A stretch of DNA of 64,000 nt from Epithemia pelagica (taxonomy: Eukaryota; Protista; Bacillariophyta): positions 496,001 through 560,000 of the forward strand of contig OX337228.1 in NCBI GenBank assembly GCA_946965045.2. The letters run 5' to 3'. How positions within the stretch are numbered: position 1 is the first letter of the stretch; each line of letters begins with the position of its first letter. Position numbers and translations under genes: made by a program. A model generated the notes under the pieces. It saw only the letters and a list, made by a program, of their open reading frames with translations. It had not been told where the DNA came from and did no database searches. Positions 1-51,476 of this stretch are shown piece after piece.

Positions 1-2078
1 TCGCGGCCAATAATGATATCATAACGACAATTGGGGGCATCAAAGATGTCGGCCCAAAGGGGGTATGAAATGTGTTTGGTCCGAGAAAACTCGGGGAGAA
101 CCAAATCTTCGAGAAGAATCTCGGAGACGTGGTCGCGCGTACCCATGGTGGTATTGACAGACCGATTGGTTACACGTGGATGCATGCCGGGCTGAAGACA
201 GCGCGCGTGCAGGATCGTCTTGTCGGCGCCTGAATTGAGCAGGGCACGCAACGGGACGGTGTTCTCGACTCCACCAATGGACCGAGCCATCAAAATGGTG
301 AGGGGAACGGACGGAGGCTCAGAGGGAGCGACCGAAAGGGGACTAGAGAAACTAGGAGCGTCAGAGACAGAACTAGATAAGTAGACATCTTCATAGTGAT
401 CTAGGTTAGATAAAAAATCATTATTGGGATCAACGATGTCAGCGATGACAGCATCCGTAGGATTTGGGCATTCCTTAAGACATGGGGAAGCGTTGGTATT
501 CGGCGTTGCCTCCAGGGGAGGACAAGTCGTAGATGTGGGCGATATCCATGTTACGCCCGTAGATCTTGAACAATTGTTCGCGGACCTCGAGGATTGGGGC
601 CTGAGGATGGCATTCTCGGCCGGCATAGCCTCTGGAGGGCCAGTCTGGATGTGACATTGCTGAGCAAAAAGAACATCAAGGTGATGAGAGACATCCGGAG
701 AGGATGAAGCAAAAAAGGAAGAAGAACACATACCGGGGACCGTTCGATCGGCATTGCGGAGACTCGACCAATCACGAGAATCGGCTAGAGGACGTTGACG
801 AGCACGATAAGCCGCGTCTTGCACAGAAGGCAACGGCTCAGCCAACGACGGATCAATCGGTGGATTGTCGTCTGTGTTGGTGCCTTCAGAGGCATGCTGG
901 TCGGAGCCAGATCCAGAACGACGGGGAACAGCGCCCCAACTGGAACCAGTAGGGCGAGATTCTCCAGATGAGGGAGTTCCCTGGCCACGAGAGCCTTGAC
1001 CATTACGGCCTTGTTTCTGAGAACCATTGTTGGGCTGAGACCCAGTAGGGGTGCGAAGACCAGACCTGGTACGGGCAAGAGAGGCGTTGAAATGCTCTTG
1101 GTTAAAATTGGAGGACTGCGGGTTGTAGATGCAGTTGGCCCAAGTATGATTGGCGTGCGAAGAAATCGTGTCCTTGTAAGGACAGGCATCGCCGTCATTG
1201 ACTGGACGATCACCGGACGTTTGGCGTTCACCATTGGAGTGGCGATTGCCGCCGCGTAGACCGCCACGACCACCATTAGAGGAGCGGAAACGCTTGGAGG
1301 AAGAACCACGAGAAGTGGAATCATTGCGAGGATTGCGGGACTTGGCCTGGGACTGTGTATTGGCAGCCATCTTTTCTTGAGAGGCCCGTTGATAGCCACG
1401 CATTGCTTGAAGGAGGTCGGTGACATTGAAATGGTTCACCAGATCTGCAACCAAGGGATTGGCCGTCTTGAACTCGTTGCGCCAAGCAACCGGGGAGCCA
1501 AGATAGAAGGCTTGCTTCAGCTCATCGTCGGTGAGAGCCTGAACAGCGTTGTCGTTAGACAAATAACGGAGACCGTTCAAAAACTTTTTGAGGGTGTGAT
1601 AATGAATATCAACGGTCATGTCAGGTGGCTTGCGAGGACCGCAAAGGAGGTGTGACCGGAAGGCATTGACTTAGGAAACAGTCAACTTGGGTTCGAAGAT
1701 CGTAGCAATCAACTGTTTAAAACACGCTTCATCAAGGTTAGCGCCATCAGGCAGGGCCTGAAATGCAACATGGAACTTGTCCGCAACGAGACTTGTGGTA
1801 ACACGAGGAAAGTAGGTGCAACAGGCAGCAAAGGGCTCTGGATGACCGGAGATCTTGACCTTGTCAACAAAATGGAGGACCCAAAGGAAGAGATTCGAGG
1901 GCTCTTCATCCACGCCATCTCGAAATGGCATGAGACGGACATAGTACTTGTCATCGTTGTCGTCTTTCATCTTGAGGGTGGAAAGAGCAGAGGAAGAATC
2001 TGAAGCCGAGGCTTGATCAAAGCGCTTTTGGAAGCGTTGAACATCCGCAATGGAGACGAGGGAAGATCCTGTGCTCAT
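1..2078 (-). pseudogene. gag: Gypsy gag-protease, disrupted by a GAA->TAA nonsense codon at 1671-1673
   Basis: ORF 1671..2114 equals the N-terminus of ORF 10916..12082. The frame continues past the stop through CPYKDTISSHANHTWANC into the LLDSGA protease region. Confidence 0.85.
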
Positions 2079-2205
2079 GATGAGACTGCAAAGAAAGGGA
2101 AGAAAAGGAATCAAAGGATGATGAGATCAACGATGATCGGTCAAAGAAAGGTAAGTGGTTATGGTGAAAGAGTGCTGGGGGAAGTTTTGGAGCTTCTGAT
2201 CAGAG

Positions 2206-2421
2206 TGCCATACCCATGTAAAATAGCACGGTATAAAAATTGTGATCTTTAGGAATTAGGAGGAATTAGGGGGAATGAGGAATCCACAGTGCCACGTGCG
2301 ACGAGAAATGACTGGAGGAGGAACAGCCAGATGGTGGGAGATTCATGTCGCAGTGTCAAGAACGCGAACCGGGAATGGAACGTGACGACACGTATGGCGG
2401 GATCCATATAGGGGTACCGCA
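2206..2421 (-). repeat. Gypsy 5' LTR (216 bp, TG...CA)
   Basis: Near-identical to 10609-10824 and 15573-15788; terminal inverted repeat TGCGGTACCC / GGGTATGGCA. Confidence 0.95.
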
Positions 2422-2474
2422 GGTAGTAGGTACTACAAGATGTTTCCGATAATTTTTGATAGGAGTAGAATCCG

Positions 2475-2569
2475 TCGCACAAGTTATACTATATGGTACA
2501 GTCGTCTCGATAAGGAGTACAGCTTCTTGTGTCTTGTGGTTGATTCACTTAACACACCGCAGACAAGAC
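2475..2569 (+). repeat. Terminal ~95 bp of the TCGCA...TGCGA LTR-like repeat family
   Basis: Matches the start of the 633-bp insert at 48104; inverted copy at 10461-10555; partial copies at 7302-7362 and 47694-47754. Confidence 0.8.
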
Positions 2570-2572
2570 TCA

Positions 2573-4171
2573 GGTTCGGTCTTATGGGAGCGTGATACCA
2601 TCTACCATCTCATATCATAATTTTTGCGCGCGTGTCCTGACATGGCAGCGTGATAAGATGATGAAGATGAATATCATGCGCAAATTTTTGACGCATGTGA
2701 TATTCATCCTTATCATCTTATCACGCTGGAGAATATCTTCCAGCTACCCCCAAGCTGAGGGTGAGTCATTAGTCGCACATGAGTCGAAGTACTACGTGCA
2801 TTCGTATACTCACCCCCTTGGCGCGAGGTCCTTTTTTGGCGATTTCTCGATTCTGATTTCTGATACAAACCTCATTGCACCTCAACACAGTCACTACGGC
2901 CACCAACGAGTGAGATTCATTTCACCACCCATCCTTGTTTCCAAGCTGATCCAAAGGTTACACCCAAGTCCGATACCCCTAACAACACCTTCTAGGTCAT
3001 CTACTTGGCCAACACAAGGCATTTGAGTTTGTATGGACACGTCCCATTCTACTATAGCTCCTCGGAATGGAAGTAGGATTTTCGTCTAATATAGCCTTAT
3101 ATTGCCCACGACGGCCGCGCTCTCATACGCGAGCAAGTGCGGAGCTAAACAAGCTAGTGCGGAGCAAAAAAAACAGTCCTGGGAAAAAAGTGTGACAGTT
3201 AATTAGGGGGGGGACTCGGAGGTTATAGAAGCAAGCGACATCCCCTCCTGGTCGTGGGGGCACTTGTCGGGGCTATTGACTCCTCGGCGGGCAATAGCTC
3301 CTCGTCGTGGACCGCCAAATCCGCTGACGCGGATTTAGAAGGCGGTCCACTTCTCGGAGCTATTGCCCTTCTCGGAGTCAATAGCCCCTCCTCGTGCCTC
3401 CCCACTCCGCGGAGCGGATGTAGAATTACTACTACACTCGACACAAACCGCATCCAATCGAAAAACATGTCTGTCTACCCCAAAAACTTTTTCTGACTGG
3501 CATGGCAAGAAAGCCCGTCCGTGGCAACTCCAAGCCTGTGAAGGTGTGCCTTGCATCCCTTCAACCATCCTTCTCGTTCGGTCAATTAATATGAATCAAT
3601 ACTAAACGAATTTATTTTTTATTTCAATGATTGCTTGTATGCTATTGCTCGGTCCAGTTTGTCTCCTACTGCTGTTCCATCGTTGTTTCCATTTGTCAAC
3701 CCTAACGTGCCTCCATCATCTTCCATTGCTTCCAATCTCTGAAAAAGCCTGTATCGGATGTCAAAGTCAAAGATTGAGGGGACACCGACGATGACGACAC
3801 AAGAGTCAATGGAGGATTGAATTTCAACAAGTCGCCGGTACTTTGCATGATAGAGGTGGATGTCATCGAATTTGTACAACGAGGCCTCCCTCTGTGATGT
3901 TCTTCACTGGCTGGGGAATTGACGAGTTCTTGTGCTTGCTGGTTTCTTGTGTTGCTCGGCAGCGACAGGAGGAGGGGATTGCTGTTGTGGTGGTCCTCGG
4001 GGATCAGTATGAAGAGGAGTGTTGGGAGAAGGGGCAAGGGTTGGAATGGTATACAAGGATGCACTAGGTGGATTGTTCGCATTTGATTGTTCGGTTCCCT
4101 GGTTGCCCATAGCACCACGATTGTTGGCCGTCTCAGTGGGATTGGCTAGTGGTTGCTGTCTTGCAACAGAA
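2573..4171 (-). mobile_element. Partial inverted copy of the 3-kb long-armed non-autonomous element (right arm plus part of the interior)
   Basis: Reverse complement of 9251-10457, plus a 374-bp insertion at 3055-3428. Confidence 0.85.
3055..3428 (-). mobile_element. 374-bp insertion of unknown class carrying a 152-nt rod hairpin with 5x5 internal loops
   Basis: Absent from the two homologous loci (~10000 and ~51045); flanked by the direct repeat CTACTA (3049-3054, 3429-3434); hairpin at 3254-3405. Confidence 0.8.
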
Positions 4172-4384
4172 ACCCATCATGCTCATAAATTCAAGACAGC
4201 ACTGTCTCGTCTGAGGAGACAGCCAGATTGACGTGGCAGCTTTGAATATACAAATCAGGAGAGAAGATGTTTGATGTTTGGCTTAGGTGGCCACGTTCAT
4301 GCCAAGTCAAAGGAAACAAAGCAGAGTCGATGTTGTCACTTTTCAAGGCAAACTACTTGTAGCCAGATAACATTTTTTCTTGCA

Positions 4385-5602
4385 ATGGACGATTGGATTA
4401 TTGATGCCGTGTTTGAAGAAGAGCTTGAGCTTGTTCTTGTCATCCATTTATTCAATCAAAGAAAACGTCTCCGACTCATGAAATGGCAACACCGTCGTCT
4501 CGATTGGGATGAATATGTTGCGATGCTTCTCCACACAAATGAGTTTGAGAACACTTTGCACATGAGTTATGAAGCATTCTCCATTCTAGTAGATTTGATA
4601 CGTCCTGGCATTTCCATCGATCCGATGCTCTCCAGCGCCGGCAGTGGCGGCAATGATCCAATCTATCCGGAAATGGTTGCATCAATCGGTCTACGTTGGT
4701 TTGGTGGAGAACTAGAGAAAAGTTTGAAGCATATCCATGGGGTATCGAGAGATACAGTCCGTCGCATGATCAACCTGTTTCTCAAAGCAGTAAAGGAATG
4801 TGAGCATCTTGCAATCCAACTGCCTACCACCGAGGAAGGCTTGAAGGAACTTGCCGATGGTTTTGGAGAAGTGAGTGAATCTCAAGGCCTCATGTATGGG
4901 TGTGTTGGAGCCATTGATGGGTGGCTCTGTACCCATGAACGCCCGAGGTTTGAAGAAAATCAGGCTGACTATTTCTCTGGCCATTACCATCGATATGGAT
5001 CAAACGTACAAGCGGTATGTGATTCGAAACTCAAATTTATATACGTTGCGTACGCTGCTCCTGGGAAAACAAACGACATCAACGCGTTTAGAATGTGCAC
5101 TGGTCTCCACGAGTGGATGCATGCGCTCACTCAAGAAAGAAAGTATTACCTTGTTGGCGACAACGCATATGAACTTTCTGACCAATTGTTGATTCCGTTC
5201 TCAGGCGCCAACATTTCAAGACAAAACTCAGACTTCAATTTCTTTTTGTCGCAAATGAGGATACGAATTGAAATGGCGTTTGGGAGATTGACAACGAAAT
5301 GGCGAATCTTCAGACGAGACTTCCAGTACGATGTAACAAAAATACGTGACACGGTAATGGTAGCATGCCAACTGCACAACTTTGTAATTGCGCATGGAGA
5401 TTCCATAGAGCAAAATGAAAATACAGAAGATTTTATTGAAGCCCTAGAACAAGCAAGAGATGGGCTCGGGTATTATGAAACTACGCAAGAAACAAGTGCA
5501 GTCGAGGTGGGCCATTCTGCAAGGCAAGAGTGGTTGTCGCAACAAATTCAACTCGAGGGTATTGGCCGTCCAACAGCCAACACCCTATTCATCAATCATT
5601 GA
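4385..5602 (+). CDS. PIF/Harbinger (HARBI1-like, DDE_Tnp_4 type) transposase, intact ORF
   Basis: Motifs GAIDG, NVQAVCD, PGKTND, LVGDNAY, FN..LSQMRIRIEMAFGRLTTKWRI, CQLHNF. Likely start MDDWII at 4385 (track ORF starts 4271). Confidence 0.92.
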   Translation: MDDWIIDAVFEEELELVLVIHLFNQRKRLRLMKWQHRRLDWDEYVAMLLHTNEFENTLHMSYEAFSILVDLIRPGISIDPMLSSAGSGGNDPIYPEMVASIGLRWFGGELEKSLKHIHGVSRDTVRRMINLFLKAVKECEHLAIQLPTTEEGLKELADGFGEVSESQGLMYGCVGAIDGWLCTHERPRFEENQADYFSGHYHRYGSNVQAVCDSKLKFIYVAYAAPGKTNDINAFRMCTGLHEWMHALTQERKYYLVGDNAYELSDQLLIPFSGANISRQNSDFNFFLSQMRIRIEMAFGRLTTKWRIFRRDFQYDVTKIRDTVMVACQLHNFVIAHGDSIEQNENTEDFIEALEQARDGLGYYETTQETSAVEVGHSARQEWLSQQIQLEGIGRPTANTLFINH

Positions 5603-7005: not shown

Positions 7006-7235
7006 GATGATGGTCGAACCCAACAAAAACAAACACTCTGCTTTTTGTTGCTCCGAGTAGCATTGGCAGCAAAACGTTGCCCTCACAGCCCTTGCATGCT
7101 CGCAGTGACTTGCACGCAATTTTTGCGAGCGCCCGCGCTAAATTTTTAGATTTGGAGTCCCCCCTCGCACTCGCACCTGCCCCCGCACCAAAAAGTAGCC
7201 TGACAAGTTACCGTCTTAGCGGTTTTTTTGCTTCC

Positions 7236-7426
7236 GAATCGCGTTTTGGTGAGCATGAGCACCAGAATCGCGCTTTTGCTCGTCGATAGAATGGGCCCTG
7301 AGTCTTGTCTGCGGTGTGTTAAGTGAATCAACCTCAAGAAGTTGTACTCCTCATCGAGACGAATCGCGTTTTGGTGAGCATGGGCACCAAAATCATGCTT
7401 TTGCGCGTCGATAGAGTGGGCCCTGA
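7236..7426 (+). repeat. 125-bp-period duplication of the Harbinger end/flank junction (TIR end + TGA + LTR-like fragment)
   Basis: GAATCGCG...GGGCCC-TGA occurs at 7236-7301 and 7361-7426; the same arrangement is at 47628-47818. Confidence 0.85.
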
Positions 7427-10400
7427 GGTTCGGTCTTATCGGAGCGTGATATCATCTCATATCATAAGTTTTGCACGCTGGAAGATTACCCCCAAGCTGA
7501 GGGTGAGTATTTAGTCGCATATAAGTCGTACCTGAAGGTACTTCCTGTTACTCACCAGGGTTTGGAAGTCACGTTACCAGGCATACGAACTTGACTTTTA
7601 CAGCTAAAGTCTCTAATAAAATGTACTCTGACTTAACTTGTACTTTCAGAGTCGCTATCTAACAACTAGGAACTTGACTTCAACTTTACAGTTTTCCAAA
7701 TTCTTTCCCGCACCCCCCATCGACTTGACTTTACGTGTAAACTCAACCTGCATGGAATCCTGAACTCAACTTTGACTTTCATCCAAAGTCAAAGTCTCTG
7801 TCTCGCGAAAGCAACTTGACTTTAGGCTCTTTGACTTTACAGACTTTGACTTTAAGTCTCAGACTTTACGACATAAAGTCTCTATAACACACAACCACCA
7901 TGGGTATTTGTTGTTTAGACTTTAGACGTGAGACAGAAGTGCACACTTGCAACACTGCCCAATAGTCAGCAGTCAGCAATGCCCAGTGCCCAGTAAAGAA
8001 CCGAAGCACCTCCATCCTCCACCACTCTCCAATTGCCGTGGACCATGAACCATCGACACTCGACACCCTATAGACCCCATCTTTCAGTATGCAGTTCTTG
8101 CAATATAATCATCTCCCTAGAACACACTCCATTCTCTTTCTTTGCGCTAATGAAGACACAAGTCAATGTTACCATCAATGACTACAAAGCCAGACTTGAT
8201 TCCATCTCTGACACCATTTTCCTAGTGGGTTATAGGGTTACTAGCACTGTCATTTAACTTGTGTGGGTAAAGTCAGCGAGTACTACTACTGTGACTTGAC
8301 TTGTGTGGATAAAGTTGGAAGTGGTATGATAGGAACTTGACTTTGGGCGTTAAAGTCAGTGTTCTGTATGCTATGACTTTACTTTACTTGGTGGGGGGCG
8401 TGAAGTCGAGGCGATGCGGAGGGCTGACTTGACTTTGTGCGTAAAGTCAGTGCTACGAAGTTGAATGACTTGACTTTGGATAGTCCTAAAGTCTTAAAGT
8501 TGGTGTTAAAGTCTTAAAGTTTGGTGTTGTCCAAAGTCAGACTTCCAAACCCTGTTACTCACCCCCTTGGCGCGAGGCCCAAGCTCTCGATTCTGATACA
8601 AATTTCACATTACCTCCCTTCATTCATCACGGTAGTGGAGGTGCGGTGGTCTGTAACACTCCGAATGTCGACTTCTTCTTCACACAAACGACACCGTAGT
8701 TCCCAAAAGGATGTCAGGAAAGCCTTTGCGGCTCATCGCATTTTCGAAAGGTCCACGGCGTCCGATAGAGACGGTATAGAGAGAAAAGAGAATCGCCAAA
8801 AGCCATCCGACCTCTACATTGCCGAATGACTCCTCCTCTCCTTTCCCTAAACCTTCTTCCAAAAGAGGTGATGCGACCTCCTCCAATTCCCCATACAGGA
8901 CCCCTTTGGTGAACAACCCCCCGTATCAAGCTGCCGGCACCACGGGAAGACCGGAACCGTCCATCTTTTTGGACGCTGCTGCTGCCACCTCTCTGCCGAC
9001 CATCCCTTCGGTGCATAGCAACTCCACAAGACCTCAGATTCGTGTTACCTCCCATCCTTCTTTTCCCCACGCGGCTCCCGCCAGTCTTTCCTCTGCTACC
9101 GAAGCAGCTCCCATCAATTCTTCCTCGAATCCACAGCCTGGACAGACAAGGCTCTCTTCGACATTCTTTGAAACAGACGTGAATCCTTCGGTCAAGTGGA
9201 GTTTGGCACTCAATCTTCTCCTCCAAAGGCAATGCACGTCCTACCATCATCTTCTGTTGCAAAACAGCAACCACTAGCCAATCCCACTGAGACGGCCAAC
9301 AATCGTGGTGCTATGGGCAACCAGGGAACCGAACAATCAAATGCGAACAATCCACCTAGTGCATCCTTGTATACCATTCCAACCCTTGCCCCTTCTCCCA
9401 ACACTCCTCTTCATACTGATCCCCGAGGACCACCACAACAGCAATCCCCTCCTCCTGTCGCTGCCGAGCAACACAAGAAACCAGCAAGCACAAGAACTCG
9501 TCAATTCCCCAGCCAGTGAAGAAGATCACAGACTCGTTGTACAAATTCGATGACATCCACCTCTATCATGCAAAGTACCGGCGACTTGTCGAAATTCAAT
9601 CCTCCATTGACTCTTGTGTCGTCATCGTCGGTGTCCCCTCAATCTTGACTTTGACATCCGATACATGCTTTTTCAGAGATTGGAAGCAATGGAAGATGAT
9701 GGAGGCACGTTAGGGTTGACAAATGCAAACGACGATGGAACAGCAGTAGGAGACAAACTGGACCGAGCAATAAATTATTTGGAAGCATACAAGCAATCAT
9801 TGAAATAAAAAATAATTTCGTTTAGTATTGATTCATATTAATTGACCGAACGAGAAGGATGGTTGAAGGGATGCAAGGCACACCTTCACAGGCTTGGAGT
9901 TGCCACGGGCGGGCTTTCTTGCCATGCCAGTCAGAAAAAGTTTTCGGGGTAGACAGACATGTTATTCGATTGGATGCGGTTTGTGTCGAGTGTAGTAGAA
10001 TGGGACGTGTCCATACGAACTCAAATGCCTTGTGTTTGCCAAGTAGATGACCTAGAAGGTGTTGTTAGGGGTATCGGACTTGGGTGTAACCTTTGGATCA
10101 GCTTGGAAACAAGGATGGGTGGTGAAATGAACCTCACTCGTTGGTGGCCGTGGTGACTGTGTTGAGGTGCAATGAGGTTTGTATCAGAAATCAGAATCGA
10201 GAAATCGCCAAAAAGGACCTCGCGCCAAGGGGGTGAGTATACGAATGCACGTAGTGCTTCGACTCATGTGCGACTAATAACTCACCCTCAGCTTGGGGGT
10301 AGCTGGAAGATATTCTCCAGCAATGAATATCACATGCGTCAAAAATTTGCGCATGATATTCATCTTCATCATCTCATCACGCTGCCAATTCAGGACACGC

Positions 10401-10457
10401 GCGCAAAAATTATGATATGAGATGGTAGATGGTATCACGCTCCCATAAGACCGAACC
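7427..10457. mobile_element. 3-kb non-autonomous DNA element with long inverted arms and 3-bp TSD TGA (PIF/Harbinger-type by TSD and GG terminus)
   Basis: TIR GGTTCGGTCTTAT(C/G)GGAGCGTGATA(T/C)CATCT at both ends; TGA at 7424-7426 and 7458-equivalent right TSD at 10458-10460; arm similarity extends inward to ~8601 and ~10176. Confidence 0.8.
7556..8554. mobile_element. hAT-type MITE (999 bp)
   Basis: Perfect 15-bp TIR CAGGGTTTGGAAGTC; 8-bp TSD TTACTCAC (7548-7555, 8555-8562); dense GACTT/AAGTC subterminal motifs; no ORF. Confidence 0.9.
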
Positions 10458-10460
10458 TGA

Positions 10461-10555
10461 GTCTTGTCTGCGGTGTGTTAAGTGAATCAACCACAAGACA
10501 CGAGAAGCTGTACTACGTATCGAGACGACTCTACCATAAAGTATAACTTGTGCGA
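10461..10555 (-). repeat. Terminal fragment of the TCGCA...TGCGA LTR-like family
   Basis: Reverse complement of 48104-~48193; ends ...ACTTGTGCGA at 10555. Confidence 0.8.
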
Positions 10556-10608
10556 CGGATTCTACTCCTATCAAAAATTATCGGAAACATCTTGTAGTAC
10601 CTACTTAC

Positions 10609-10824
10609 TGCGGTACCCCTATATGGATCCCGCCATACGTGTCGTCACGTTCCATTCCCGGTTCGCGTTCTTGACACTGCGACATGAATCTCCCACCATC
10701 TGGCTGTTCCTCCTCCAGTCATTTCTCGTCGCACGTGGCACTGCGGATTCCTCATTCCCCCTAATTCCTCCGAATTCCTAAAGATCACAATTTTTATACC
10801 ATGCTATTTTACATGGGTATGGCA
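10609..10824 (+). repeat. Gypsy 5' LTR
   Basis: TG...CA, direct repeat of 15573-15788. Confidence 0.95.
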
Positions 10825-10951
10825 CTCTGATCAGAAGTTCAAAAACTTCCCCCAGCACTCTTTCACCATAACCACTTACCGTTCTTTGACCGATCCTCGT
10901 TGATCTCATCATCCTTTGATTCCTTTTCTTCCCTTTCTTTGCAGTCTCATC

Positions 10952-13900
10952 ATGAGCACAGGATCTTCCCTCGTCTCAATTGCGGATGTTCAACGCTTCC
11001 AAAAGCGCTTTGATCAAGCCTCGGCTTCAGATTCTTCCTCTGCTCTTTCCACCCTCAAGATGAAAGACGACAACGATGACAAGTACTATGTCCGTCTCAT
11101 ACCATTTCGAGATGGCGTGGATGAAGAGCCCTCGAATCTCTTCCTTTGGGTCCTCCATTTTGTTGACAAGGTCAAGATCTCCGGTCATCCAGAGCCCTTT
11201 GCTGCCTGTTGCACCTACTTTCCTCGTGTTGTTACCACAAGTCTCATTGCGGACAAGTTCCATGTTGCATTTCAGGCCCTGCCTGATGGCGCTGACCTTG
11301 ATGAAGCGTGTTTTAAACAGTTGATTGCTACAATCTTCGAACCCAAGTTGACTGTTTCCGAAGTCAACGCCTTCCGGGCACACCTCCTTTGCGGTCCTCG
11401 CAAGCCACCTGACATGACCGTTGATATTCATTATCACACCCTCCAAAAGATTTCGAACGGTCTCCGTTATTTGTCTAACGACAACGCTGTTCAGGCTCTC
11501 ACCGACGATGAGCTGAAGCAAGCCTTCTATCTTGGCTCCCCGGTTGCTTGGCGCAACGACTTCAAGACGGCCAATCCCTTGGTTGCAGATCTGGTGAATC
11601 ATTTCAATGTCACCGACCTCCTTCAAGCAATGCGTGGCTATCAACGGGCCTCTCAAGAAAAGATGGCTGCCAATACACAGTCCCAGGCCAAGTCCCGCAA
11701 TCCTCGCGATGATTCCACTTCTCGTGGTTCTTCCTCCAAGCATTTCCGCTCCTCTAATGGTGGTCGTGGCGGTCTCCGCGGCGGCAATCGCCACACCAAT
11801 GGTGAACGCCAAGCGTCCGGTGATCGTCCAGTCAATGACGGCGATGCCTGTCCTTACAGGGACACAATTTTCTCCGCAATGCCGATCGAACGGACCCCGG
11901 TATGTGTTCTTCTTCCTTTTTTGCTTCATCCTCTCCGGATGTCTCTCATCATCTTGATGTTCTTTTTGCTCAGCAATGTCACATCCAGACTGGCCCTCCA
12001 CAGGCTATGCTGGCCGAGAATGCCATCCTCAGGCCCCAATCCTCGAGGTCCGCCAACAATTGTTCAAGATCTACGGGCGTAACATGGATATCGCCCACAT
12101 CTACCACTTGTCCTCCCCTGGAGGCAACGCCGAATACCAACGCTTCCCCATGTCTTAAGGAATGCCCAAATCCTACGGATGCTGTCATCGCTGACATCGT
12201 TGATCCCAATAATGGTTTTTTATCTAACCTAGATCACTATGAAGATGTCTACTCATCTAGTTCTGTCTCTGACGCTCCTAGTTTCTCTAGTCCCCTTTCG
12301 GTCGCTCCCTCTGAGCCTCCGTCCGTTCCCCTCACCATTTTGATGGCTCGGTCCATTGGTGGAGTCGAGAACACCGTCCCGTTGCGTGCCCTGCTCGATT
12401 CAGGCGCCGACAAGACGATCCTGCACGCGCGTTGTCTTCAGCCCGGCATGCATCCACGTGTAACCAATCGGTCTGTCAATACCACCATGGGTACGCGCGA
12501 CCACGTCTCCGAGATTCTTCTCGGAGATTTGGTTCTCCCCGAGTTTTCTCGGACCAAACACATTTCATACCCCCTTTGGGCCGACATCTTTGATGCCCCC
12601 AATTGTCGTTGCGATATCATTATTGGCCGCGATCTCTTGCGTCGCTTGGGCATTGTGCTCAATTTCAACACTGGTCTCACAACTTGGGACTCAGTCGATG
12701 TCGCTATGCGCCATCGCGATTCATTCGCTACCGACCAGACATTGATGTCTCATTTCATCGACATCTTTGCCGACAATCCCATTATTGGTGATCAATTCCT
12801 CTTGGATTCCAACTACGTTCCTACGGATCTACAAGAGTTGATCAATAAACAAGACCATCTTACCGATGACCAAAAGCAAGATCTTCTTGCCATTTGGCAA
12901 GACTGTGGCAAGATTTTTGATGGTGAGCTCCGTGAATACCCGGATCGAACGCTCCATCTACATCTCAAGCCTGATGCCCAGCCTGTCCATCATCGCCATT
13001 TCTCGGTCCCTCGAAACATACACGATACCTTTACAAAGGAGCTGTGGCGCTTCGTCGACATCGGCATCCTTGAGCGCGTCGGTTCCACCGAATGGGCTGC
13101 TCCTCACTTTGCCATTCCTAAAAAGGATGGCCGCATCCGAATGATTTCGGACTTTCGTTCTTTGAACGCCCAACTCTACCGTCGGGTCTACCCCTTTCCT
13201 CTTATCGAGGATATGCTTCGTAAACGGAAAGGCTACAAATATTTTACCAAGTTGGACATCTCCATGTGTTTTTACACATTCCGCCTCGATGAGGAATCGA
13301 GCAATCTTTGCGTCATTACTACGCCTTTTGGCAAATTCCCTTACCGTCGTCTGCCGATGGGTGTCAAACAATCTCCTGACTTTTGTCAAGAGATAATGGA
13401 AGACGTCCTCAGTGACTTCAGCGACCATGTCGAAGTCTATATCGACGACATTGGCATCTTCTCCAATTCTTGGGAAGAACATGTGGACATCCTGTCCAAA
13501 GTTCTCCAACTTCTTCAAGAAAAGAACTTCTCCATTAACCCTTCCAAGTGTGAATGGGCCGTTAAAGAAACGGAATGGCTCGGCCATTGGCTTACACCCA
13601 CTGGGATCAAACCCTGGAAAAAGAAAATCTCTGCGTTTGGTCCCCGCAATGTCAACGTGCTTTCGAACAAGCCAAGTCCATGCTCGCACATGATGCCTTT
13701 CTTCGGTATCCCGACCATAACCTTTCCTTCCATGTCTATGTGGACGCCTTTGATTACCAGCTTGGCGCTGTAATCATGCAACAAGACGTTCCCGTCGCAT
13801 ATTACTCTCGCAAGTTGAACCCTGCTCAACGCAACTACACTACTATGGAAAAGAAGTTGCTCTCAATTGTCGAAACCCTGAAAGAGTTCCGCTCCATGCT

Positions 13901-15493
13901 TCTCGGCTGTGCCAAACTGCACGTCCATACGGACCATAAGAATCTTACCTATGCTACCCTCAACTTGCGCGGGTCCTCCGTTGGCGGTTGTTCCTCGAGG
14001 AGTACAATCCGATTTTTCATTACGTCCCTGGCCAGGACAATGTCATCGCCGACGCCTTGTCGCATCTCCCTCTCTCTAAAGAGGAGGAGAAGAGTGTCTC
14101 TCCGTCGTCGACCTCCTCTACGGATGCCTCGCCGCATCCATGATCGCTCTATGATCATAGCGGACAACACTCAGTGTTGCAAGTGCCTCATGGCCCTAAT
14201 GATGACCCCCGCTCTCATCACTCGCGTGATCCCGACGCTTTCAAATCTCCCATCTTCATGGATGAGGATTTGATCGATGTCTACCTCAATCATCCTCCCA
14301 TTACGGCAAATCAACCCTTGCCTGTCGACTACGCGACGATTCATCACCGTCAACAGAACGATGCCACTCTTGTGGCCAAGTTGACCGAACAACCCCAGAG
14401 ATTTCATCTCCAGCCTTTTCCTACGGAAAATCCGCAATACAACTTGATTTGTTATCGTCAGAATTCTAATGCCGCATGGCGTATTCGCATCCCAGACAGC
14501 CTCTTGGCCCACACCGTTAATTGGTATCACCTATCCCTCATTCACTTGGGGTCTACATGTCTTCATGAGACGATTTCTATACACATGAGTCATCCTGACT
14601 TGGGCCTGTATTGTGAACAAGCCGGGTCGAGTTGTGCTACCTGCCAACGCTCTAAAGTCATACATCGCCATTACGGTGAACTCCCTCCTTGCAAGGTCCG
14701 AGGCAATCCATGGGCTGACATCTCTGTCGACCTCATTGGACCGTGGAACGTCACCGTTCATGGGCAGAAATTAACATTTCAAGCCTTGACTATTATTGAC
14801 AATGTCACTAATTTCTGCGAGCTCATTCGCATCCATGATAAGACGGCACGTCATGTGGGTCTTCAATTGGAAAACGCGTGGCTCTCACACTATCCTCGTC
14901 CCGTTCGTTGCCTTTTTGATCAAGGCGGTGAATTTATTGGACATGCGTTCTCGCAAGTTCTTCGCAATCATGGCATCAAGCCAGTACCATTGACGGCCAA
15001 GAATCCTCAATCAAATGCTCTTTGCGAGCAGTTACATCTGACTGTTGGAAACACTCATCGTGTGATCACCAACTATGAACCACCACAAGATGCGCAGAAT
15101 GCTGCACTTGCTGTGGATACTGCTCTGTAGACCGCTGCGTATTCCACTCGCACTGCCATTCATGGCGCCTTGAAATATTCTCCCGGCAGCCTTGCGTTCC
15201 ATCGCGACATGCTGTTCGACATCCCTATTATCGCGGACATGGAAACAGTCCGTCTGAAACGACAACAGATTGTCGATGAACGCGCTCGTCTCGCAAATCG
15301 CTCTCGTGTCTTTCATGACTACGCGGTCAACGATCGTGTGTTGCTTCGCGCCACGAATCCAGACAAGCTTGAGCTCCGCACAAGCCCTAATCCCTTTCGG
15401 ATTACACAAGTCCATTCCAATGGCACTGTGACTATCCAACGTGGTCCCCACGTCACTACATTCGTCGTCTTGTTCCATTTCGTGAATAAATAA
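10952..15493 (+). pseudogene. pol: Gypsy gag-pol with a ~400-bp gag deletion and several frameshifts/stops
   Basis: PR RALLDSGA; RT YIDDIG and LDISMCFY; RNase [14 protein letters not shown] and HTDHKNL; IN H..L.H.G...C.TCQ, DLIGP, DQGGEF; split over ORFs 10916, 11902, 13575, 14174, 15170. Confidence 0.93.
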
Positions 15494-15572: not shown

Positions 15573-15788
15573 TGCGGTACCCCTATATGGATCCCGCCAT
15601 ACGTGTCGTCACGTTCCATTCCCGGTTCGCGTTCTTGACACTGCGACATGAATCTCCCACCATCTGGCTGTTCCTCCTCCAGTCATTTCTCGTCGCACGT
15701 GGCACTGTGGATTCCTCATTCCCCCTAATTCCTCCGAATTCCCAAAGATCACAATTTTTGTACCGTGCTATTTTACATGGGTATGGCA
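15573..15788 (+). repeat. Gypsy 3' LTR
   Basis: TG...CA, followed by CTACC, which matches the 5' flank of the inverted copy. Confidence 0.95.
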
Positions 15789-15991
15789 CTACCTACTCCT
15801 AATCATTATGTTCTCGAAAATTCAAGTGTTTGCTGCATGACAATACTACCTATTGAAATAACATGTGAATCCTTTTAGTATAACTAAAATCGAATATCAG
15901 GGGGGAGTTGATTCAGGCTATCTACCTAGATGATTTGCATGTACTTTTATGTTGCACTGAGAGAGGGTCGAGCGATCACGACTCTCATCCA

Positions 15992-43906: not shown

Positions 43907-44505
43907 TCAACGTTCTTACTAGAAACTTAACAGTTATCCGTAGTTTTGTCATGCGAGTGTGCTTCAACGGATAGAATGACAGACGATTGTCGGATCCACA
44001 AATCCACAATCCACACACTCCATATACGACGGCAACGACGACAGCTCTACGATCTACGAAGAAGAAAGACAATCTTACGATAGCACAACTACGGATAATG
44101 TATCGAGGCGACGGACGTGATAAAAAAATGTTTTTGCTAGTATTCACAAAATTGCATTCGTGCTAATGGGATCGGGGTTCATTCATTTTTTCGTTTGACG
44201 ACATTTCACAGGTGATGACGAATGTGCTGATGATCCGCATTGTCATTCCGTCCTGCGATTGTATATGCTAATGTAGTAGAAACATAAAAACTACCCATCA
44301 TGCTCATAAATTCAAGACAGCACTGTCTCGTCTGAGGAGACAGCCAGATTGACGTGGCAGCTTTGAATATACAAATCTGGAGAGAAGATGTTTGATGTTT
44401 GGCTTAGGTGGCCACGTTCATGCCAAGTCAAAGGAAACAAAGCAGAGTCGATGTTGTCACTTTTCAAGGCAAACTACTTGTAGCCAGATAACATTTTTTC
44501 TTGCA

Positions 44506-45567
44506 ATGGACGATTGGATTATTGATGCCGTGTTTGAAGAAGAGCTTGAGCTTGTTCTTGTCATCCATTTATTCAATCAAAGAAAACGTCTCCGACTCAT
44601 GAAATGGCAACACCGTCGTCTCGATTGGGATGAATATGTTGCGATGCTTCTCCACACAAATGAGTTTGAGAACACTTTGCACATGAGTTATGAAGCATTC
44701 TCCATTCTAGTAGATTTGATACGTCCTGGCATTTCCATCGATCCGATGCTCTCCAGCGCCGGCAGTGGCGGCAATGATCCAATCTATCCGGAAATGGTTG
44801 CATCAATCGGTCTACGTTGGTTTGGTGGAGAACTAGAGAAAAGTTTGAAGCATATCCATGGGGTATCGAGAGATACAGTCCGTCGCATGATCAACCTGTT
44901 TCTCAAAGCAGTAAAGGAATGTGAGCATCTTGCAATCCAACTGCCTACCACCGAGGAAGGTTTGAAGGAACTTGCCGATGGTTTTGGAGAAGTGAGTGAA
45001 TCTCAAGGCCTCATGTATGGGTGTGTTGGAGCCATTGATGGGTGGCTCTGTACCCATGAACGCCCGAGGTTTGAAGAAAATCAGGCTGACTATTTCTCTG
45101 GCCATTACCATCGATATGGATCAAACGTACAAGCGGTATGTGATTCGAAACTCAAATTTATATACGTTGCGTACGCTGCTCCTGGGAAAACAAACGACTT
45201 CAACGCGTTTAGAATGTGCACTGGTCTCCACGAGTGGATGCATGCGCTCACTCAAGAAAGAAAGTATTACCTTGTTGGCGACAACGCATATGAACTTTCT
45301 GACCAATTGTTGATTCCGTTCTCAGGCGCCAACATTTCAAGACAAAACTCAGACTTCAATTTCTTTTTGTCGCAAATGAGGATACGAATTGAAATGGCGT
45401 TTGGGAGATTGACAACGAAATGGCGAATCTTCAGACGAGACTTCCAGTACGATGTAACAAAAATACGTGACACGGTAATGGTAGCATGCCAACTGCACAA
45501 CTTTGTAATTGCGCATGGAGATTCCATAGAGCAAAATGAAAATCAGAAGATTTTATTGAAGCCCTAG
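44506..45567 (+). CDS. PIF/Harbinger transposase, copy 2; C-terminal tail lost by a 1-bp deletion near 45543
   Basis: Matches copy 1 (one I/F difference seen) through the DDE core and CQLHNF; frame shifts after IEQNEN. Confidence 0.88.
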   Translation: MDDWIIDAVFEEELELVLVIHLFNQRKRLRLMKWQHRRLDWDEYVAMLLHTNEFENTLHMSYEAFSILVDLIRPGISIDPMLSSAGSGGNDPIYPEMVASIGLRWFGGELEKSLKHIHGVSRDTVRRMINLFLKAVKECEHLAIQLPTTEEGLKELADGFGEVSESQGLMYGCVGAIDGWLCTHERPRFEENQADYFSGHYHRYGSNVQAVCDSKLKFIYVAYAAPGKTNDFNAFRMCTGLHEWMHALTQERKYYLVGDNAYELSDQLLIPFSGANISRQNSDFNFFLSQMRIRIEMAFGRLTTKWRIFRRDFQYDVTKIRDTVMVACQLHNFVIAHGDSIEQNENQKILLKP

Positions 45568-45762
45568 AACAAGCAAGAGATGGGCTCGGGTATTATGAAA
45601 CTACGCAAGAAACAAGTGCAGTCGAGGTGGGCCATTCTGCAAGGCAAGAGTGGTTGTCGCAACAAATTCAACTCGAGGGTATTGGCCGTCCAACAGCCAA
45701 CACCCTATTCATCAATCATTGAATAGTAGTAATGGTAGTACCACTGTAGTATCATTTTCCTC

Positions 45763-47397
45763 TTACTCCTCATTGTCCTTTGATGCATCCTCCATTGTTT
45801 TCATGACGACTTTGTATCGCCTATCGATCACATGGAACTCACGTTTGGCCTCGAGGAACGCTTCACCAAACTCGTACCGCTGTGAATCAGAGGCAATAGT
45901 GCTTGTACTTTGTTGCGACAAAGGAATCTGTGGCTGAAATCCATCCAACTGTCCTCGCATTTGGTCTAGGACTCCATCATAGAGGTGCTTCTCTCCATCA
46001 ACCTTTTTTGTTGCCTTGAGGTTTGCTTTAGCCGTCTTCATTTCATTTTTCTTTACGGTATGGAGTGGGGTCAATTGTTCAAGTTCAGCCATCATAGCAT
46101 TGGAGGCTTGAGTCTTTACAGCCAAGGCTTGATGTGCCACTAGCTTCTCTTTCAAAGCATTACTTGCTTTGATGGCTTCGACCAATTGTTTGTTAGACTC
46201 GTGGAGTTGCTTCTGTTTCTTGTAAGAGCGTTGTTTCTTTCCATCCGATGGGTTGGTCGACTGAGAGAAAACACTTGGATCCCGAAACAAACGAAGGACA
46301 AGGTCAGAAAGGTTTGCTTCTTCGACAAAGTTGTGAAAATACATCAAATAATACTTTGATCGAACAAAATGAATGAATGATTTCTGACTTTCTTGGTCTG
46401 TGGGAGGAGAGATCTCTTCATTATCTTCGTCGACATCTGAGTATGCATCACCATGGTTCCCAGAGCGTTTGTAGTTATAGAAAGACGTAGTGTAGAGACG
46501 CCGCAGTTCCGCGACTGCCTTCTTTGCTTTCTCTTTGTCAAATCTTCCACGAAGGAGTCCTGGATTGACTGAGGTTTGATTGGGGATTCCTCTCCCATAT
46601 TTATTTGCTTTCAATTCACTGTTATTGGCTTCATTGTATAGTTTGGCTATTTCTTCATGAAGAACGTCTGCAGGCAAGCGTCGGTCATCAATCTCACGAC
46701 GAGTGGCTGTCGAACACAGATTTGGGAGCAGTGGCTTGATTCTATCATGGGAAAGAACATTGACAAGACGGAAATAGTTGGTATACACGACTGTGCTTGT
46801 TGTTGGTATAGTAGTGTTTGACTGCGGAGGAGCACTATTGGCTGTACCAGAACCAGACATACGAGCAGCTGCAATATTTTGTGCAAAAACTTCTTCGTTG
46901 CTTTTCTTCCGCCGTGCATCCAAAATTTTGTCGACGAGCTCTTCGCAGACATCTTGTTTCTTCTTCTGGCGAAGGTTGCGAATGCCAAAGTGGGTGCCCA
47001 CTGTACGGATTTGCTCGTATGTCAAGTTTTTTACCAGGTATCCCCGAATGTGATGAATACGGGAGAGAGGAACCTGTCCTTGGTTAGACTGAGTTGTCAC
47101 CCTGTAGATTTTGGTCGTCCCAAAAATCACATCATCGTAGGTGATGGCCTCAACAATGTGCTTCCATTCTTCAATGGAAGAGGGTTTCCAGTCATGAAAT
47201 GCAGGTTTGAAGTCAGGTAGACGATAGAAATTTGAGTTTGGAGCGACGCGTGGATCATTTTCTTCTACAAGCTGGGCTTTCCCGGCTACATCACCACTAG
47301 CAACACCTCTGGAAACACCACCACCTACATCAGATTGAGTTTGTTGTTGAGAGGCTTGGCTGTACTGTGTGACAATAGGGACAGAAGAGGTGCTCAT
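45763..47397 (-). CDS. Harbinger partner protein (putative DNA-binding), intact
   Basis: 582-aa track ORF convergent with the transposase inside the TIRs; LRRLYTTSFYNYKRSGNH Myb/SANT-trihelix-like segment; likely start MSTSS at 47397. Confidence 0.8.
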   Translation of the reverse strand: MSTSSVPIVTQYSQASQQQTQSDVGGGVSRGVASGDVAGKAQLVEENDPRVAPNSNFYRLPDFKPAFHDWKPSSIEEWKHIVEAITYDDVIFGTTKIYRVTTQSNQGQVPLSRIHHIRGYLVKNLTYEQIRTVGTHFGIRNLRQKKKQDVCEELVDKILDARRKKSNEEVFAQNIAAARMSGSGTANSAPPQSNTTIPTTSTVVYTNYFRLVNVLSHDRIKPLLPNLCSTATRREIDDRRLPADVLHEEIAKLYNEANNSELKANKYGRGIPNQTSVNPGLLRGRFDKEKAKKAVAELRRLYTTSFYNYKRSGNHGDAYSDVDEDNEEISPPTDQESQKSFIHFVRSKYYLMYFHNFVEEANLSDLVLRLFRDPSVFSQSTNPSDGKKQRSYKKQKQLHESNKQLVEAIKASNALKEKLVAHQALAVKTQASNAMMAELEQLTPLHTVKKNEMKTAKANLKATKKVDGEKHLYDGVLDQMRGQLDGFQPQIPLSQQSTSTIASDSQRYEFGEAFLEAKREFHVIDRRYKVVMKTMEDASKDNEE

Positions 47398-47947
47398 GAT
47401 GATGGTCGAACCCAACAAAAACAAACACTCTGCTTTTTGTTGCTCCGAGTAGCATTGGCAGCAAAACGTTGCCCTCACAGCCCTTGCATGCCCGCAGTGA
47501 CTTGCAAGCAATTTTTGCGAGCGCCCGCGCTAAATTTTTAGATTTGGAGTCCCCCCTCGCACTCGCACCTGCCCCCGCACCAAAAAGTAGCCTGATAAGT
47601 TACCGTCTTAGCAGTTTTTTTGCTTCCGAATCGCGTTTTGGTGAGCATGAGCACCAGAATCGCGCTTTTGCTCGTCGATAGAATGGGCCCTGAGTCTTGT
47701 CTGCGGTGTGTTAAGTGAATCAACCTCAAGAAGTTGTACTCCTTATCGAGACGAATCGCGTTTTGGTGAGCATGTGCACCAAAATCATGCTTTTGCGCGT
47801 CGATAGAGTGGGCCCTGAGGTTCGGTCTTATCGGAGCGTGATATCATCTCATATCATAAGTTTTGCACGCTGGAAGATTACCCCCAAGCTGAGGGTGAGT
47901 ATTTAGTCGCATATAAGTCGTACCTAAAGGTACTTCCTGTTACTCAC

Positions 47948-49599
47948 CAGGGTTTGGAAGTCACGTTACCAGGCATACGAACTTGACTTTTACAGCTAAA
48001 GTCTATAATAAAATGTACTCTGACTTAACTTGTACTTTCAAAGTCGCTATCTAACAACTAGGAACTTGACTTCAACTTTACAGTCTTCCAAAGTCTTTCC
48101 CGCTCGCACAAGTTATAGGTATCCGATCGAGTCGTCTCGATAAGGAGTACACCTTCTTGTGGTTGATTCACTTAACACACCGTAGACAAGACTCGAACTA
48201 TCATAACTAGTTCTCTAGGTATGCTATAGAAGACGAGATTGGCGCCATTGACCATGACGGGACTACCAACATTGGCTTACATGTGAGAATCAAAGATACA
48301 TGTGAGAACCTGTGGTCATTGGGAAATGGACAATCATCCAAGGATACGTACAGGATACGTAGACACGGTACATTAGAGATATGACCCAGTAGATCCTCGT
48401 AGCCTTAGTACATTTGGGAAGAAATGCACGTAGGATCTCTGTACCCAGTACTGGGGATAATAACCTAATGTGGCAGCAAAGACAGCCATGGGGAAAGACA
48501 TACAAATCTAGAATAAAGCTCACAATCTAAAATCTCACCATTCATCACATCTCTTTGTGTCCTACCTACTCTCCTAGTAGTTGTTGGCCTTTTCCTTGAC
48601 CCGTGGGGAACTGGCTACGTAGTTGGTGACTCCTGATTGTCCTCTTTGCTCTCTGTCTGCTGAGGCTTTGGTACAGCCTCTAAAACCTAACACTCACCAC
48701 ATTCCTGTTTGGGCAGACGCCCTTTAACCTTTGCGACCCGCACCCCCCATCGACTTGACTTTACGTGTAAACTCAACCTGCATGGAATCCTGAACTTGAC
48801 TTTGACTTTCATCCAAAGTCAAAGTCTCTGTCTCGCGAAAGCAACTTGACTTTAGGCTCTTTGACTTTACAGACTTTGACTTTAAGTCTCAGACTTTACG
48901 ACATAAAGTCTCTATAACACACAACCACCATGGGTATTTGTTGTTTAGACTTTAGACGTGAGACAGTAGTGCACACTTGCAACACTGCCCAATAGTCAGC
49001 AGTCAGCGTTGCCCAGTGCCCAGTAAAGAACCGAAGCACCTCCATCCTCCATCACTCTCCAATTGCCGTGGACCATGAACCATCGACACTCGACACCCTA
49101 TAGACCCCATCTTTCAGTATGCAGTTCTTGCAATATAATCATCTCCCTAGAACACACTCCATTCTCTTTCTTTGCGCTAATGAAGACACAAGTCGATGTT
49201 ACCATCAATGACTACAAAGCCAGACTTGATTCCATCTCTGACACCATTTTCCTAGTGGGTTATAGGGTTACTAGCACTGTCATTTAACTTGTGTGGGTAA
49301 AGTCAGCGAGTACTACTACTGTGACTTGACTTGTGTGGATAAAGTCGGAAGTGGTATGATATGAACTTGACTTTGGGCGTTAAAGTCAGTGTTCTGTATG
49401 CTATGACTTGACTTGCTATGACTTGACTTTACTTGGTGGGGGGCGTGAAGTCGAGGCGATGCGGAGGGCTGACTTGACTTTGTGCGTAAAGTCAGTGCTA
49501 CGAAGTTGAATGACTTGACTTTGGATAGTCCTAAAGTCTTAAAGTTGGTGTTAAAGTCTTAAAGTTTGGTGTTGTCCAAAGTCAGACTTCCAAACCCTG
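47948..49599. mobile_element. hAT-type MITE, copy 2, containing a 633-bp insert
   Basis: Same 15-bp TIR and TTACTCAC TSD (47940-47947, 49600-49607). Confidence 0.9.
48104..48736 (+). mobile_element. Solo-LTR-like insert (633 bp) with TCGCA...TGCGA ends
   Basis: 5-bp TSD CCCGC (48099-48103, 48737-48741); empty site in the first MITE copy (~7710); terminal IR TCGCACAAGTT / TCGCAAAGGTT. Confidence 0.75.
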
Positions 49600-51253: not shown

Positions 51254-51427
51254 TAATTCCCGGTGTCGAGTCCTTTCAAGGAGGGACCGCCCGGCGCGAA
51301 GGGTAGAATGACGAGGAGGGCAATGGTCGCGGAGGGCGCATGTCCGACAAGACAATTGCCCGTCGAGTCATTCTCCCGACAAGCCGGGCGCGCCCGACGC
51401 GAAAGGACGGCCAGACACAGGGAATTA
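51254..51427 (+). other. 174-nt rod hairpin with four 5x5 internal loops (structured element of unknown class)
   Basis: Stems TAATTCCC/GGGAATTA, GTCCTTTC/GAAAGGAC, CGCCCGGC/GCCGGGCG, AGAATGAC/GTCATTCT, GGGCAAT/ATTGCCC; homologous to the minus strand of 3254-3405. Confidence 0.75.
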
Positions 51428-51476
51428 GTAAACTTACTCCCTATCAGGCTGTGTAGTTAGTGAGACTTCCTGGAAG

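Follow-up and report, generated by a model that had tools for sequence, protein, structure and literature searches.

The window analysed here, 64,000 nucleotides (nt) of the Epithemia pelagica contig OX337228.1, contains on its minus strand, at positions 3053-3428, a 376-nt non-coding element that belongs to a multi-copy family and that we call el1. Its 5' part folds into a long rod-like hairpin, and both its ends are common to 5-kb elements encoding a tyrosine-recombinase-like protein. El1 is likely to be a non-autonomous Crypton-type element, and the fuller statement, that it is such an element with a hairpin end kept by selection, we regard as probable. The original prediction, made on the same DNA, had left the element unclassified, which the shared ends no longer support; its description as a small non-autonomous mobile element agrees with a sequence that is non-coding, multi-copy and shares its ends with coding 5-kb elements.

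The segment 3055-3428 is absent from two paralogous sites in the window, at 9988-10006 and 51039-51057, both reading GAGTGTAGTAGAATGGGAC, and the flanks of the filled site are 93-98% identical to those of the two empty sites. The mobile insert with two empty homologous sites described in the prediction is thereby confirmed. As the paralogous sites lack the insert and the flanks are near-identical, the insertion of el1 is younger than the recent segmental duplication. The element has no credible open reading frame (ORF), the ORFs being 81 amino acids (aa) or shorter, its ends are without a terminal inverted repeat (TIR), and runs of T8 and T6 are found on the minus strand 64-88 nt downstream, all as predicted. 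The features of the element and its empty sites are:

3429-3432, minus strand: target word GTAG (CTAC on the plus strand) on the 5' side of el1; the insertion point is directly 3' of the word.
3053-3428, minus strand: el1 proper, 376 nt, reading TAATTCTACATCC...GAGGAGCTATA.
3049-3052, minus strand: 3'-terminal GTAG of el1, the same in seven small and three large copies; it resembles the second half of a 4-bp duplication.
3053-3086, minus strand: 3'-terminal stretch ...ATCCTACTTCCATTCCGAGGAGCTATA, about 74% identical over 34 nt (GTAG counted) to the 3' end of the 5-kb elements.
3420-3423, minus strand: CTAC, complementary to the word at the cut site, at the rod's 5' foot and 5 nt past the junction (element position 6).
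3073-3076, minus strand: second CTAC, 20 nt before the 3'-terminal GTAG (element position 353).
3139-3165, minus strand: GCTCCGC box, two direct copies in the tail (3159-3165 and 3139-3145), with a third copy in the rod base (3409-3415).
3191-3198, minus strand: CTGTCACA box downstream of the rod, common to the 5-kb relatives and present as 3-4 repeats in a second family, el2.
9995-9998, plus strand: empty target GTAG in a paralogous copy; a single GTAG is kept at the empty site.
51046-51049, plus strand: second empty target GTAG, assigned on the same basis as the first; a single GTAG is kept.

Copies, junctions and coding partner

To find further copies, translated spurious ORFs running through the rod served as bait and the contigs encoding the matches were then retrieved. 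This gave six further el1 copies (L001-L004, L008, L009), 95-98% identical, in unrelated flanks on long contigs. In sequencing runs of one organism the insert is a dispersed repeat: summed contig depth is 10-60 fold higher over precisely 3048-3428 (109 contig pieces aligned), and the homology of other copies in the read contigs begins at 3049 or 3048. Pieces about 95% identical to el1 are also contained in biofilm and marine-sediment metagenomes; exact-pattern scans of JGI metagenome contigs for the el1 3' end and the el2 rod gave no matches. One el1 copy (L001, 10004-10056) lies 51 nt past the stop codon of a 1331-aa ORF of a long interspersed nuclear element (LINE) with endonuclease and reverse transcriptase. 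No other copy has a LINE neighbour, so this is probably a chance insertion at GTAG.

Exhaustive searching with HMMER, without a length filter, also gave longer ORFs, 60-68% identical to the rod-ORF bait. They lead to three contigs (L005, L006, L007), each with one element of 4985-5077 nt. L005 and L006 are 97% identical, and L007 is about 80% identical to both. With ^ for the junction, each element starts as flank-GTAG^TAGTTCTACATCTGCTCCGCGGAGTG (GTCG in L006), continues with a 215-nt rod of five modules, about 80% identical to the el1 rod, and ends in ...ATCCTACATCCCTCCCGAGGACCAATG-GTAG, homologous to the el1 3' end. El1 thus shares with the large elements about 270 nt at the 5' end including the rod (about 80% identical) and about 35-45 nt at the 3' end, and both CTAC words are kept in these relatives.

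Two ORFs of 556 and 253 aa on the motif strand (that of the rod motif, minus in the window) are conserved in all three large elements. The shorter one, ORF2, has a protein identity of 82% in copies whose DNA identity is about 80%, with a dN/dS (nonsynonymous to synonymous substitution ratio) of 0.10; judged by these substitutions the gene is under purifying selection. Its C-terminus, AGRTARRTGISKVANSGVPQALADDFGRHKNSITNYKYQ, shows R-x-x-R, 23 residues, H, 9 residues and Y, in outline AGRTARRTG...(23)...GRH...(9)...Y, a spacing that we take to be that of box II of Cre, XerD and lambda Int. The ESM-Atlas feature neighbours of two diverged ORF2 copies, at 0.93-0.97, are clusters named 'Tyr recombinase domain', 'Integrase', PF00589, NDC10_II and DUF3504. 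NDC10_II and DUF3504 are Crypton-derived families (PMC3212892).

No reverse transcriptase, RNase H or other Pfam domain is found in the ORFs of the 5-kb elements, and no Rep/HUH domain or RepHel, the neighbours of the conserved ORFs being of integrase type only. Self-BLAST of L005 revealed neither terminal nor long repeats, the ends being TAATTC... and ...CTATA. Because it has a recombinase-like gene and lacks a reverse transcriptase, TIR or long terminal repeat (LTR), we read the 5-kb element as Crypton-type, and el1 as of the same kind because of the shared ends. The autonomous partner that the original prediction had proposed to look for would be represented by these elements, whose tyrosine-recombinase-like gene lies between homologues of the two el1 ends.

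On the motif strand the copies are laid out as flank-GTAG^TAATTCTACATCC...GAGGAGCTATA-GTAG^flank, or more generally flank-GTNG^TAATTC...CTATA-GTAG^flank. The ends are in this way defined from seven small and three large copies. The right word is GTAG in 10/10, and the left flank word, in the nine copies where it can be scored, is GTAG (6), GTCG (2; L004, L006) or GTTG (1; L008). L009 has a small deletion at its 5' junction. CTACTA had been proposed as a target-site duplication, an assignment that fails: four of its six bases recur in other copies, so it consists of the constant GTAG word and two chance bases. The insertion added 380 nt (3049-3428) on the 3' side of the target GTAG. Since the element itself ends in GTAG, the insertion mimics a 4-bp duplication.

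The right flanks carry A/C at +7/+8 after the 3' GTAG in 12 of 13 cases (9/10 loci and 3/3 loose contig ends), the exception being L009, shifted by one base, and in five of them CTAC stands at +5 to +8. All three large elements lie in GTAG-N4-CTAC targets. Taking these flanks together, the target of el1 is, as far as junction sequences tell, a loose palindrome, GTAG-N4-(CT)AC. The 5' end of el1, GTAG^TAATT-CTAC, has the same palindromic shape. Ungapped comparison of the target flanks with the element's own joint gave no extended similarity (p 0.59), and the signal is limited to GTAG plus A/C at +7/+8.

The two junctions are not equivalent. The left one carries the element's spacer (TAATT, TAGTT or TATAT) in every copy with an intact junction word. 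Element spacers are kept at 8/8 left junctions with TA(A/G)TTC and target spacers at 13/13 right junctions. In the three targets whose word is other than GTAG, the variant is on the left only (3/3). Two other element types were considered and rejected. An introner, suggested by the GT..AG flanks, fails as there is no register in which exactly 380 nt could be taken out with GT-AG ends. A short interspersed nuclear element or other LINE-dependent retroposon fails because there is no tRNA-like part and the junction words are constant.

Several further features were observed on the contigs with large elements. About 1 kb of extreme low-complexity DNA lies downstream of the recombinase-like ORF (L005 13600-14700; L007 13200-14150); several of its frames are open, one encoding poly-Asn/Gly-Arg-Pro-Pro-Tyr repeats and another poly-Thr. 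L005 (1-4181) and L002 (11284-15439) share, beside unrelated el1/Crypton copies, a repeat that exceeds 4 kb at 93% identity. Within it is a long ORF, of 2140 aa in L002, that lacks any Pfam domain, and the repeat probably represents a further mobile element. The L007 contig also has a diatom pyrenoid-shell gene.

The rod hairpin and its modules

Folded as RNA, 3254-3418 gives -121.6 kcal/mol (z -14.4) on the minus strand and -114.2 kcal/mol (z -11.9) on the plus strand, i.e. it is strongly structured on both, the minus strand being more stable. Refolding agrees with the predicted stems of 10, 15, 13, 10 and 8 bp, the three 5x5 loops, the TTCT bulge and the GTCA cap, and the minus-strand loops are indeed GAGGA/GACAA, GAGAA/GCCGA and GAGAA/GACGA. 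A GCGGAGC mini-hairpin had been proposed next to the rod at 3406-3418; the sequence is there, but it is no separate hairpin, being the 5' half of a fourth module, GCGGA/GACCA. When a longer stretch is folded this module is followed by 10 bp more stem, and the rod becomes 3238-3421. The features of the rod are:

3238-3421, minus strand: rod hairpin of about 185 nt, perfect stems of 6-15 bp with four modules between them; weaker pairing extends out to 3226-3434.
3406-3410, minus strand: module 0, 5' arm GCGGA; partner GACCA at 3249-3253.
3389-3393, minus strand: module 1, 5' arm GAGGA; partner GACAA at 3264-3268.
3369-3373, minus strand: module 2, 5' arm GAGAA; partner GCCGA at 3284-3288.
3351-3355, minus strand: module 3, 5' arm GAGAA; partner GACGA at 3302-3306.
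3317-3340, minus strand: rod tip with TTCT bulge, 8-bp stem and GTCA cap, from folding.

All interruptions of the rod are the module C-GNGRA-G / C-GNCRA-G, so that both arms read C-G-N-S-R-A-G on the minus strand. Each 5x5 loop is predicted to consist of two purine-purine 2x2 loops flanking a single G-C pair. G is opposite A at both loop ends, often as the classical tandem 5'-GA/5'-GA step. As the code C-GNSRA-G is on both arms, the purine-purine pairs (mostly tandem G.A) are formed on the gene-sense strand only, and the complementary strand has pyrimidine-pyrimidine mismatches. By nearest-neighbour energy the minus strand is favoured by 10.1 kcal/mol with RNA and 6.4 kcal/mol with DNA parameters. 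Over 128 kb (both strands) the 7-mer CGNSRAG occurs at background frequency except in the el1 and el2 rods, which have 8 and 7 copies within 200 nt. The rod begins 5-8 nt from the el1 junction, and the remaining 185 nt of el1, its tail, fold no better than shuffles.

Pairing between the two ends of el1, seen in one minimum free energy structure, competes with module 0. It is disfavoured, because the N position of the module 0 loop has changed twice independently, in L001 and L004.

The rod was aligned over four el1 copies and the three large elements. Across its 73 pairs 99.2% of the cells are paired, and eight pairs have changed on both sides, compared with 0-1 when the partners are slid by 1-3 columns. 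Among the eight is the pair at the centre of module 1 (columns 51/179), G-C in el1 but C-G in the 5-kb relatives. Loop changes fall at the free N or R positions in five of six cases. Within families, 8/9 stem transitions give G.T on the motif strand (A.C on the other), with a one-sided binomial p of 0.02 from small numbers. With eight compensatory pairs, 99% of the cells paired and loops that stay within the code when they change, the view that the rod is a selected structure and not a simple fold-back is upheld.

Searching the window against Rfam gave no match at the gathering score, and at E<=1 only generic miRNA-precursor hairpin models were found, far short of their threshold (44.8 vs 137 bits). 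The rod is thus no member of an Rfam family, in line with the prediction. A viroid- or retrozyme-like circular RNA was rejected, as no Rfam ribozyme family matches. In the literature searched, no paper joins G.A-mismatch hairpins to transposon ends.

Two variants of the rod were observed. In the L003 copy the 5' arm of module 1 has taken on the complement of its 3' arm and the rod base has a 23-nt duplication, a combination that resembles inter-arm conversion or a template switch. A contig variant in the runs has 3326-3384 (59 nt; the tip and part of one arm) replaced by TC, a palindrome-type deletion.

The Crypton-type reading and its alternatives

Cryptons have no TIRs, carry 4-6-bp terminal direct repeats and include non-autonomous members of 353-755 bp (PMC3212892). 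The el1 family resembles them, in particular the CryptonS of stramenopiles and the 353-bp CryptonA-1N2_OL, in lacking TIRs and LTRs, in having at each terminus a direct repeat of 4-6 bp that does not vary within a family (here GTAG), in a gene of putative tyrosine-recombinase type as the sole recognisable enzyme of a 3-5-kb element, and in short non-coding derivatives that share their ends with the coding member (PMC3212892). It differs in its structured end (the word 'hairpin' is absent from PMC3212892), in a terminal word that is GTAG and not the TATGG or CTGTAAG of CryptonS, in a palindromic target, GTAG-N4-CTAC, and junctions with a one-strand signature, both of which are new, and in a protein that matches no Pfam integrase model. 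The Crypton papers in the literature searched do not mention a hairpin. A long one-strand hairpin with purine-purine loops is an end structure not described for the Crypton class.

Likeness to bacterial systems is found in the hairpin itself. Integron attC sites and attP(+) of CTX phage are also imperfect one-strand hairpins with mispaired bases that mark the strand, and are exchanged as single strands at a short conserved word, an exchange that at el1 would follow from the junction sequences. They are folded single-strand substrates of bacterial tyrosine recombinases: integron integrases on attC, and XerCD on CTX phage, perform a single-strand exchange followed by replication. In contrast to the repeated tandem G.A modules of the rod, they are bacterial sites of 60-140 nt with extrahelical bases. 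The IS200/IS605 group, with IS608, inserts 3' of a fixed 4-5-nt word without duplication, has hairpins on the top strand only, and has a short sequence at the hairpin foot matching the cleavage word. It is prokaryotic, uses an HUH Y1 transposase and has small hairpins at both ends, whereas here a single rod of 185-215 nt is at one end and the gene is integrase-like. Helitron2/Helentron elements are likewise eukaryotic, with a hairpin near the 5' end, compensatory stem changes and asymmetric subterminal inverted repeats (PMC3627910). Unlike the elements described here, Helitron2 encodes RepHel, targets T^T and has a hairpin of about 10-20 bp at each end.

According to the mechanism we propose, the putative recombinase of the 5-kb, Crypton-type elements would mobilise el1 in trans. 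The rod would be a cis-acting end signal that is read on one strand as folded single-stranded DNA, and the G.A modules would mark that strand and perhaps provide places for more than one recombinase subunit. At either end, cutting and joining 3' of GTAG would involve the rod-bearing strand alone, and the second strand would be supplied by replication, as at integron attC sites. The one-strand exchange signature of the junctions suggests such a folded single-strand mechanism. Exchange of the motif strand only, followed by replication, fits because the junction spacers are uniform, the element's on the left and the target's on the right; with a double-strand, staggered-cut exchange and non-identical spacers either arrangement would be expected after replication. 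The general proposal, that this diatom Crypton clade moves via a folded single strand, with a GTAG-N4-CTAC hairpin or palindrome as target and the rod as the counterpart of attC, is tentative; on sequence evidence we place it somewhat below the balance of probability.

A number of observations weigh against the Crypton-type reading or parts of it. Apparent compensation can also come from gene conversion of one hairpin arm by the other, and in the el1 copy of L003 (10148-10204, reverse strand) the GAGGA arm of module 1 has become TTGTC, the exact complement of GACAA. Inter-arm conversion is doubtful as a general cause, because it would erase the loops too, and the other copies keep the code. 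As DNA, the strand asymmetry is modest, 4-6 kcal/mol in nearest-neighbour models. ORF2 has Arg at the place of the first His of the usual H-x-x-R, sequence searches of the 5-kb element ORFs against Pfam, PHROGs, NCBIfam and PDB gave no match, and an AlphaFold model of ORF2 from three sequences has a pLDDT (predicted local distance difference test) of 30 and no usable fold. The ends that el1 has in common with the 5-kb elements are only about 80% identical, and these elements may not be its current mobiliser. Finally, all extra copies come from a single ENA assembly, ERZ21939226, which may represent the same organism as the window.

The rod might instead work as RNA, as a 5' leader controlling the recombinase gene or as a hairpin that escapes or feeds small-RNA silencing, with el1 keeping it by descent only. 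In L005-L007 the motif strand is the coding strand and the rod is upstream of the gene, the strand asymmetry is bigger with RNA parameters (10-16 kcal/mol), the longest perfect stem is 15 bp and T-runs follow the rod. However, el1 has lost the gene while the rod is still complete in it, with 95-98% identity from copy to copy, and what deletion derivatives of DNA transposons retain is what movement needs in cis. The position of the rod within 5-8 nt of the junction, with the complement of the cut word at its foot, is unfavourable to an RNA role, as are the empty Rfam search and the fact that none of the runs containing the sequence is recorded as RNA; we consider this role unlikely. Somewhat less credible is that the modules are a safety device, regular mismatches that prevent cruciform extrusion or deletion, with the recombinase reading only the short palindromic junction. 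The palindrome is unstable, as the tip-deleted variant and the arm-converted, duplicated L003 copy exist, and the targets themselves are short palindromes. For such a purpose any mismatch would do, yet C-G-N-S-R-A-G with a paired centre is conserved in about 20 loop strands from three families, and the centre pair is maintained by a compensatory flip.

An HUH/Rep element that moves by single-strand 'peel-and-paste' or rolling circle (IS200/IS605, Replitrons, Helitron2), its recombinase-like gene being misread or accessory, would account for the way the element inserts, on the 3' side of a fixed 4-nt word and with no true duplication, and also for that word at its own 3' end, the strand-specific hairpin and the one-strand signature of the junctions. 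The CTAC complement at the hairpin foot also recalls the guide sequences of IS608, reportedly described by Barabas et al. in 2008. This explanation is nevertheless improbable: the 5-kb elements have no Rep/HUH domain and their feature neighbours are of integrase type throughout, the hairpin is at one end only with a tail that folds no better than shuffles, and Replitrons, looked for in diatoms, were not detected there (PMC10288648). Nor are the Helitron rules (5'-TC, CTRR-3', A^T or T^T targets) obeyed, the ends being TAATTC / GTAG and the flanks G^T...G^N. There is very little left for an ordinary fold-back or miniature inverted-repeat transposable element, mobilised by a DDE transposase that leaves target-site duplications of 4-6 bp, and with loops that are mere decay. 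El1 is small, non-coding and multi-copy, it has a flanking direct repeat, and a PIF/Harbinger transposase lies 0.9 kb away (4271-5602). Against this, it has no TIRs and its hairpin is internal to one end, the flank word is constant across copies and the left and right words are unequal in three of them, and the rod has coded loops and covarying stems. Harbinger elements, moreover, make TWA duplications.

If el1 is a Crypton-type element as we propose, it would bear on a class that is, to our knowledge, the least understood among eukaryotic DNA transposons; we know of no cis-acting end structure or reaction intermediate for it. Cryptons are hard to annotate since their ends are featureless. The el1 family offers a large terminal hairpin that is sequence-coded and covaries, together with a palindromic target and a cut word that is defined, and its abundant, recently active 376-nt passengers are a compact substrate for biochemical and genetic tests. 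The rod signature can be used to find such elements in other stramenopile genomes, and the repeated module is a candidate for a new protein-recognition or strand-marking motif in nucleic acids. The folded-strand route, if true, would be the first single-strand transposition pathway of a tyrosine recombinase in eukaryotes and the first mechanistic handle on Cryptons.

A second rod family and the surrounding DNA

A second rod is located near the far end of the window:

about 51251-51523, plus strand: el2, about 270 nt; rod at 51254-51427 with the same loop code, tail (AAGTGTCAYR)n at 51477-51520.

The el2 rod has a z of -10.5. It had been taken for a diverged homologue of the el1 rod. The same loop code is present, but no sequence similarity to el1 is detectable. 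Judged by sequence comparison, 51254-51427 is a different family that shares the architecture of el1 and has no alignable sequence with it. The plan is alike, with a TAAT...TTC start, a rod carrying the loop code on one strand and a tail of repeated boxes, and the el2 box AAGTGTCAYR is related to the CTGTCACA box of el1 and the 5-kb elements. A second el2 copy is found in L003 (19014-19279), 93% identical and with one compensatory pair (51256/51425). The number of 10-nt AAGTGTCAYR units differs between the two, with about 3.5 copies in the window (51477-51520) vs 4.5 in L003 (19240-19290). A bait search with the internal ORF of el2 gave no match. In the window, el2 sits exactly where the homology of a duplicated segment stops.

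Scanning 30 ORFs of the window with Pfam showed no recombinase, only Harbinger, Ty3/gypsy and host genes. El1 sits in one arm of an inverted segmental duplication of more than 4 kb, 97-99% identical (1-4171 / 9252-12632), whose arms enclose a 5-kb segment with the ORF of the PIF/Harbinger DDE transposase (4271-5602). The 6-kb segment 4172-10196 recurs as a direct copy 40 kb downstream (44293-51212). The body of a Ty3/gypsy-type retrotransposon is found at 10916-15130, with protease-reverse transcriptase, RNase H and integrase ORFs, and its LTRs may include the short direct repeats seen at 10609-10826 and 15573-15790. Each copy of the duplicated segment has a 68-nt repeat twice in tandem, with 125 nt between the two (7235-7427 and 47627-47819), and an inverted copy of it (48128-48194), 370 nt off, is found in the second segment copy only.

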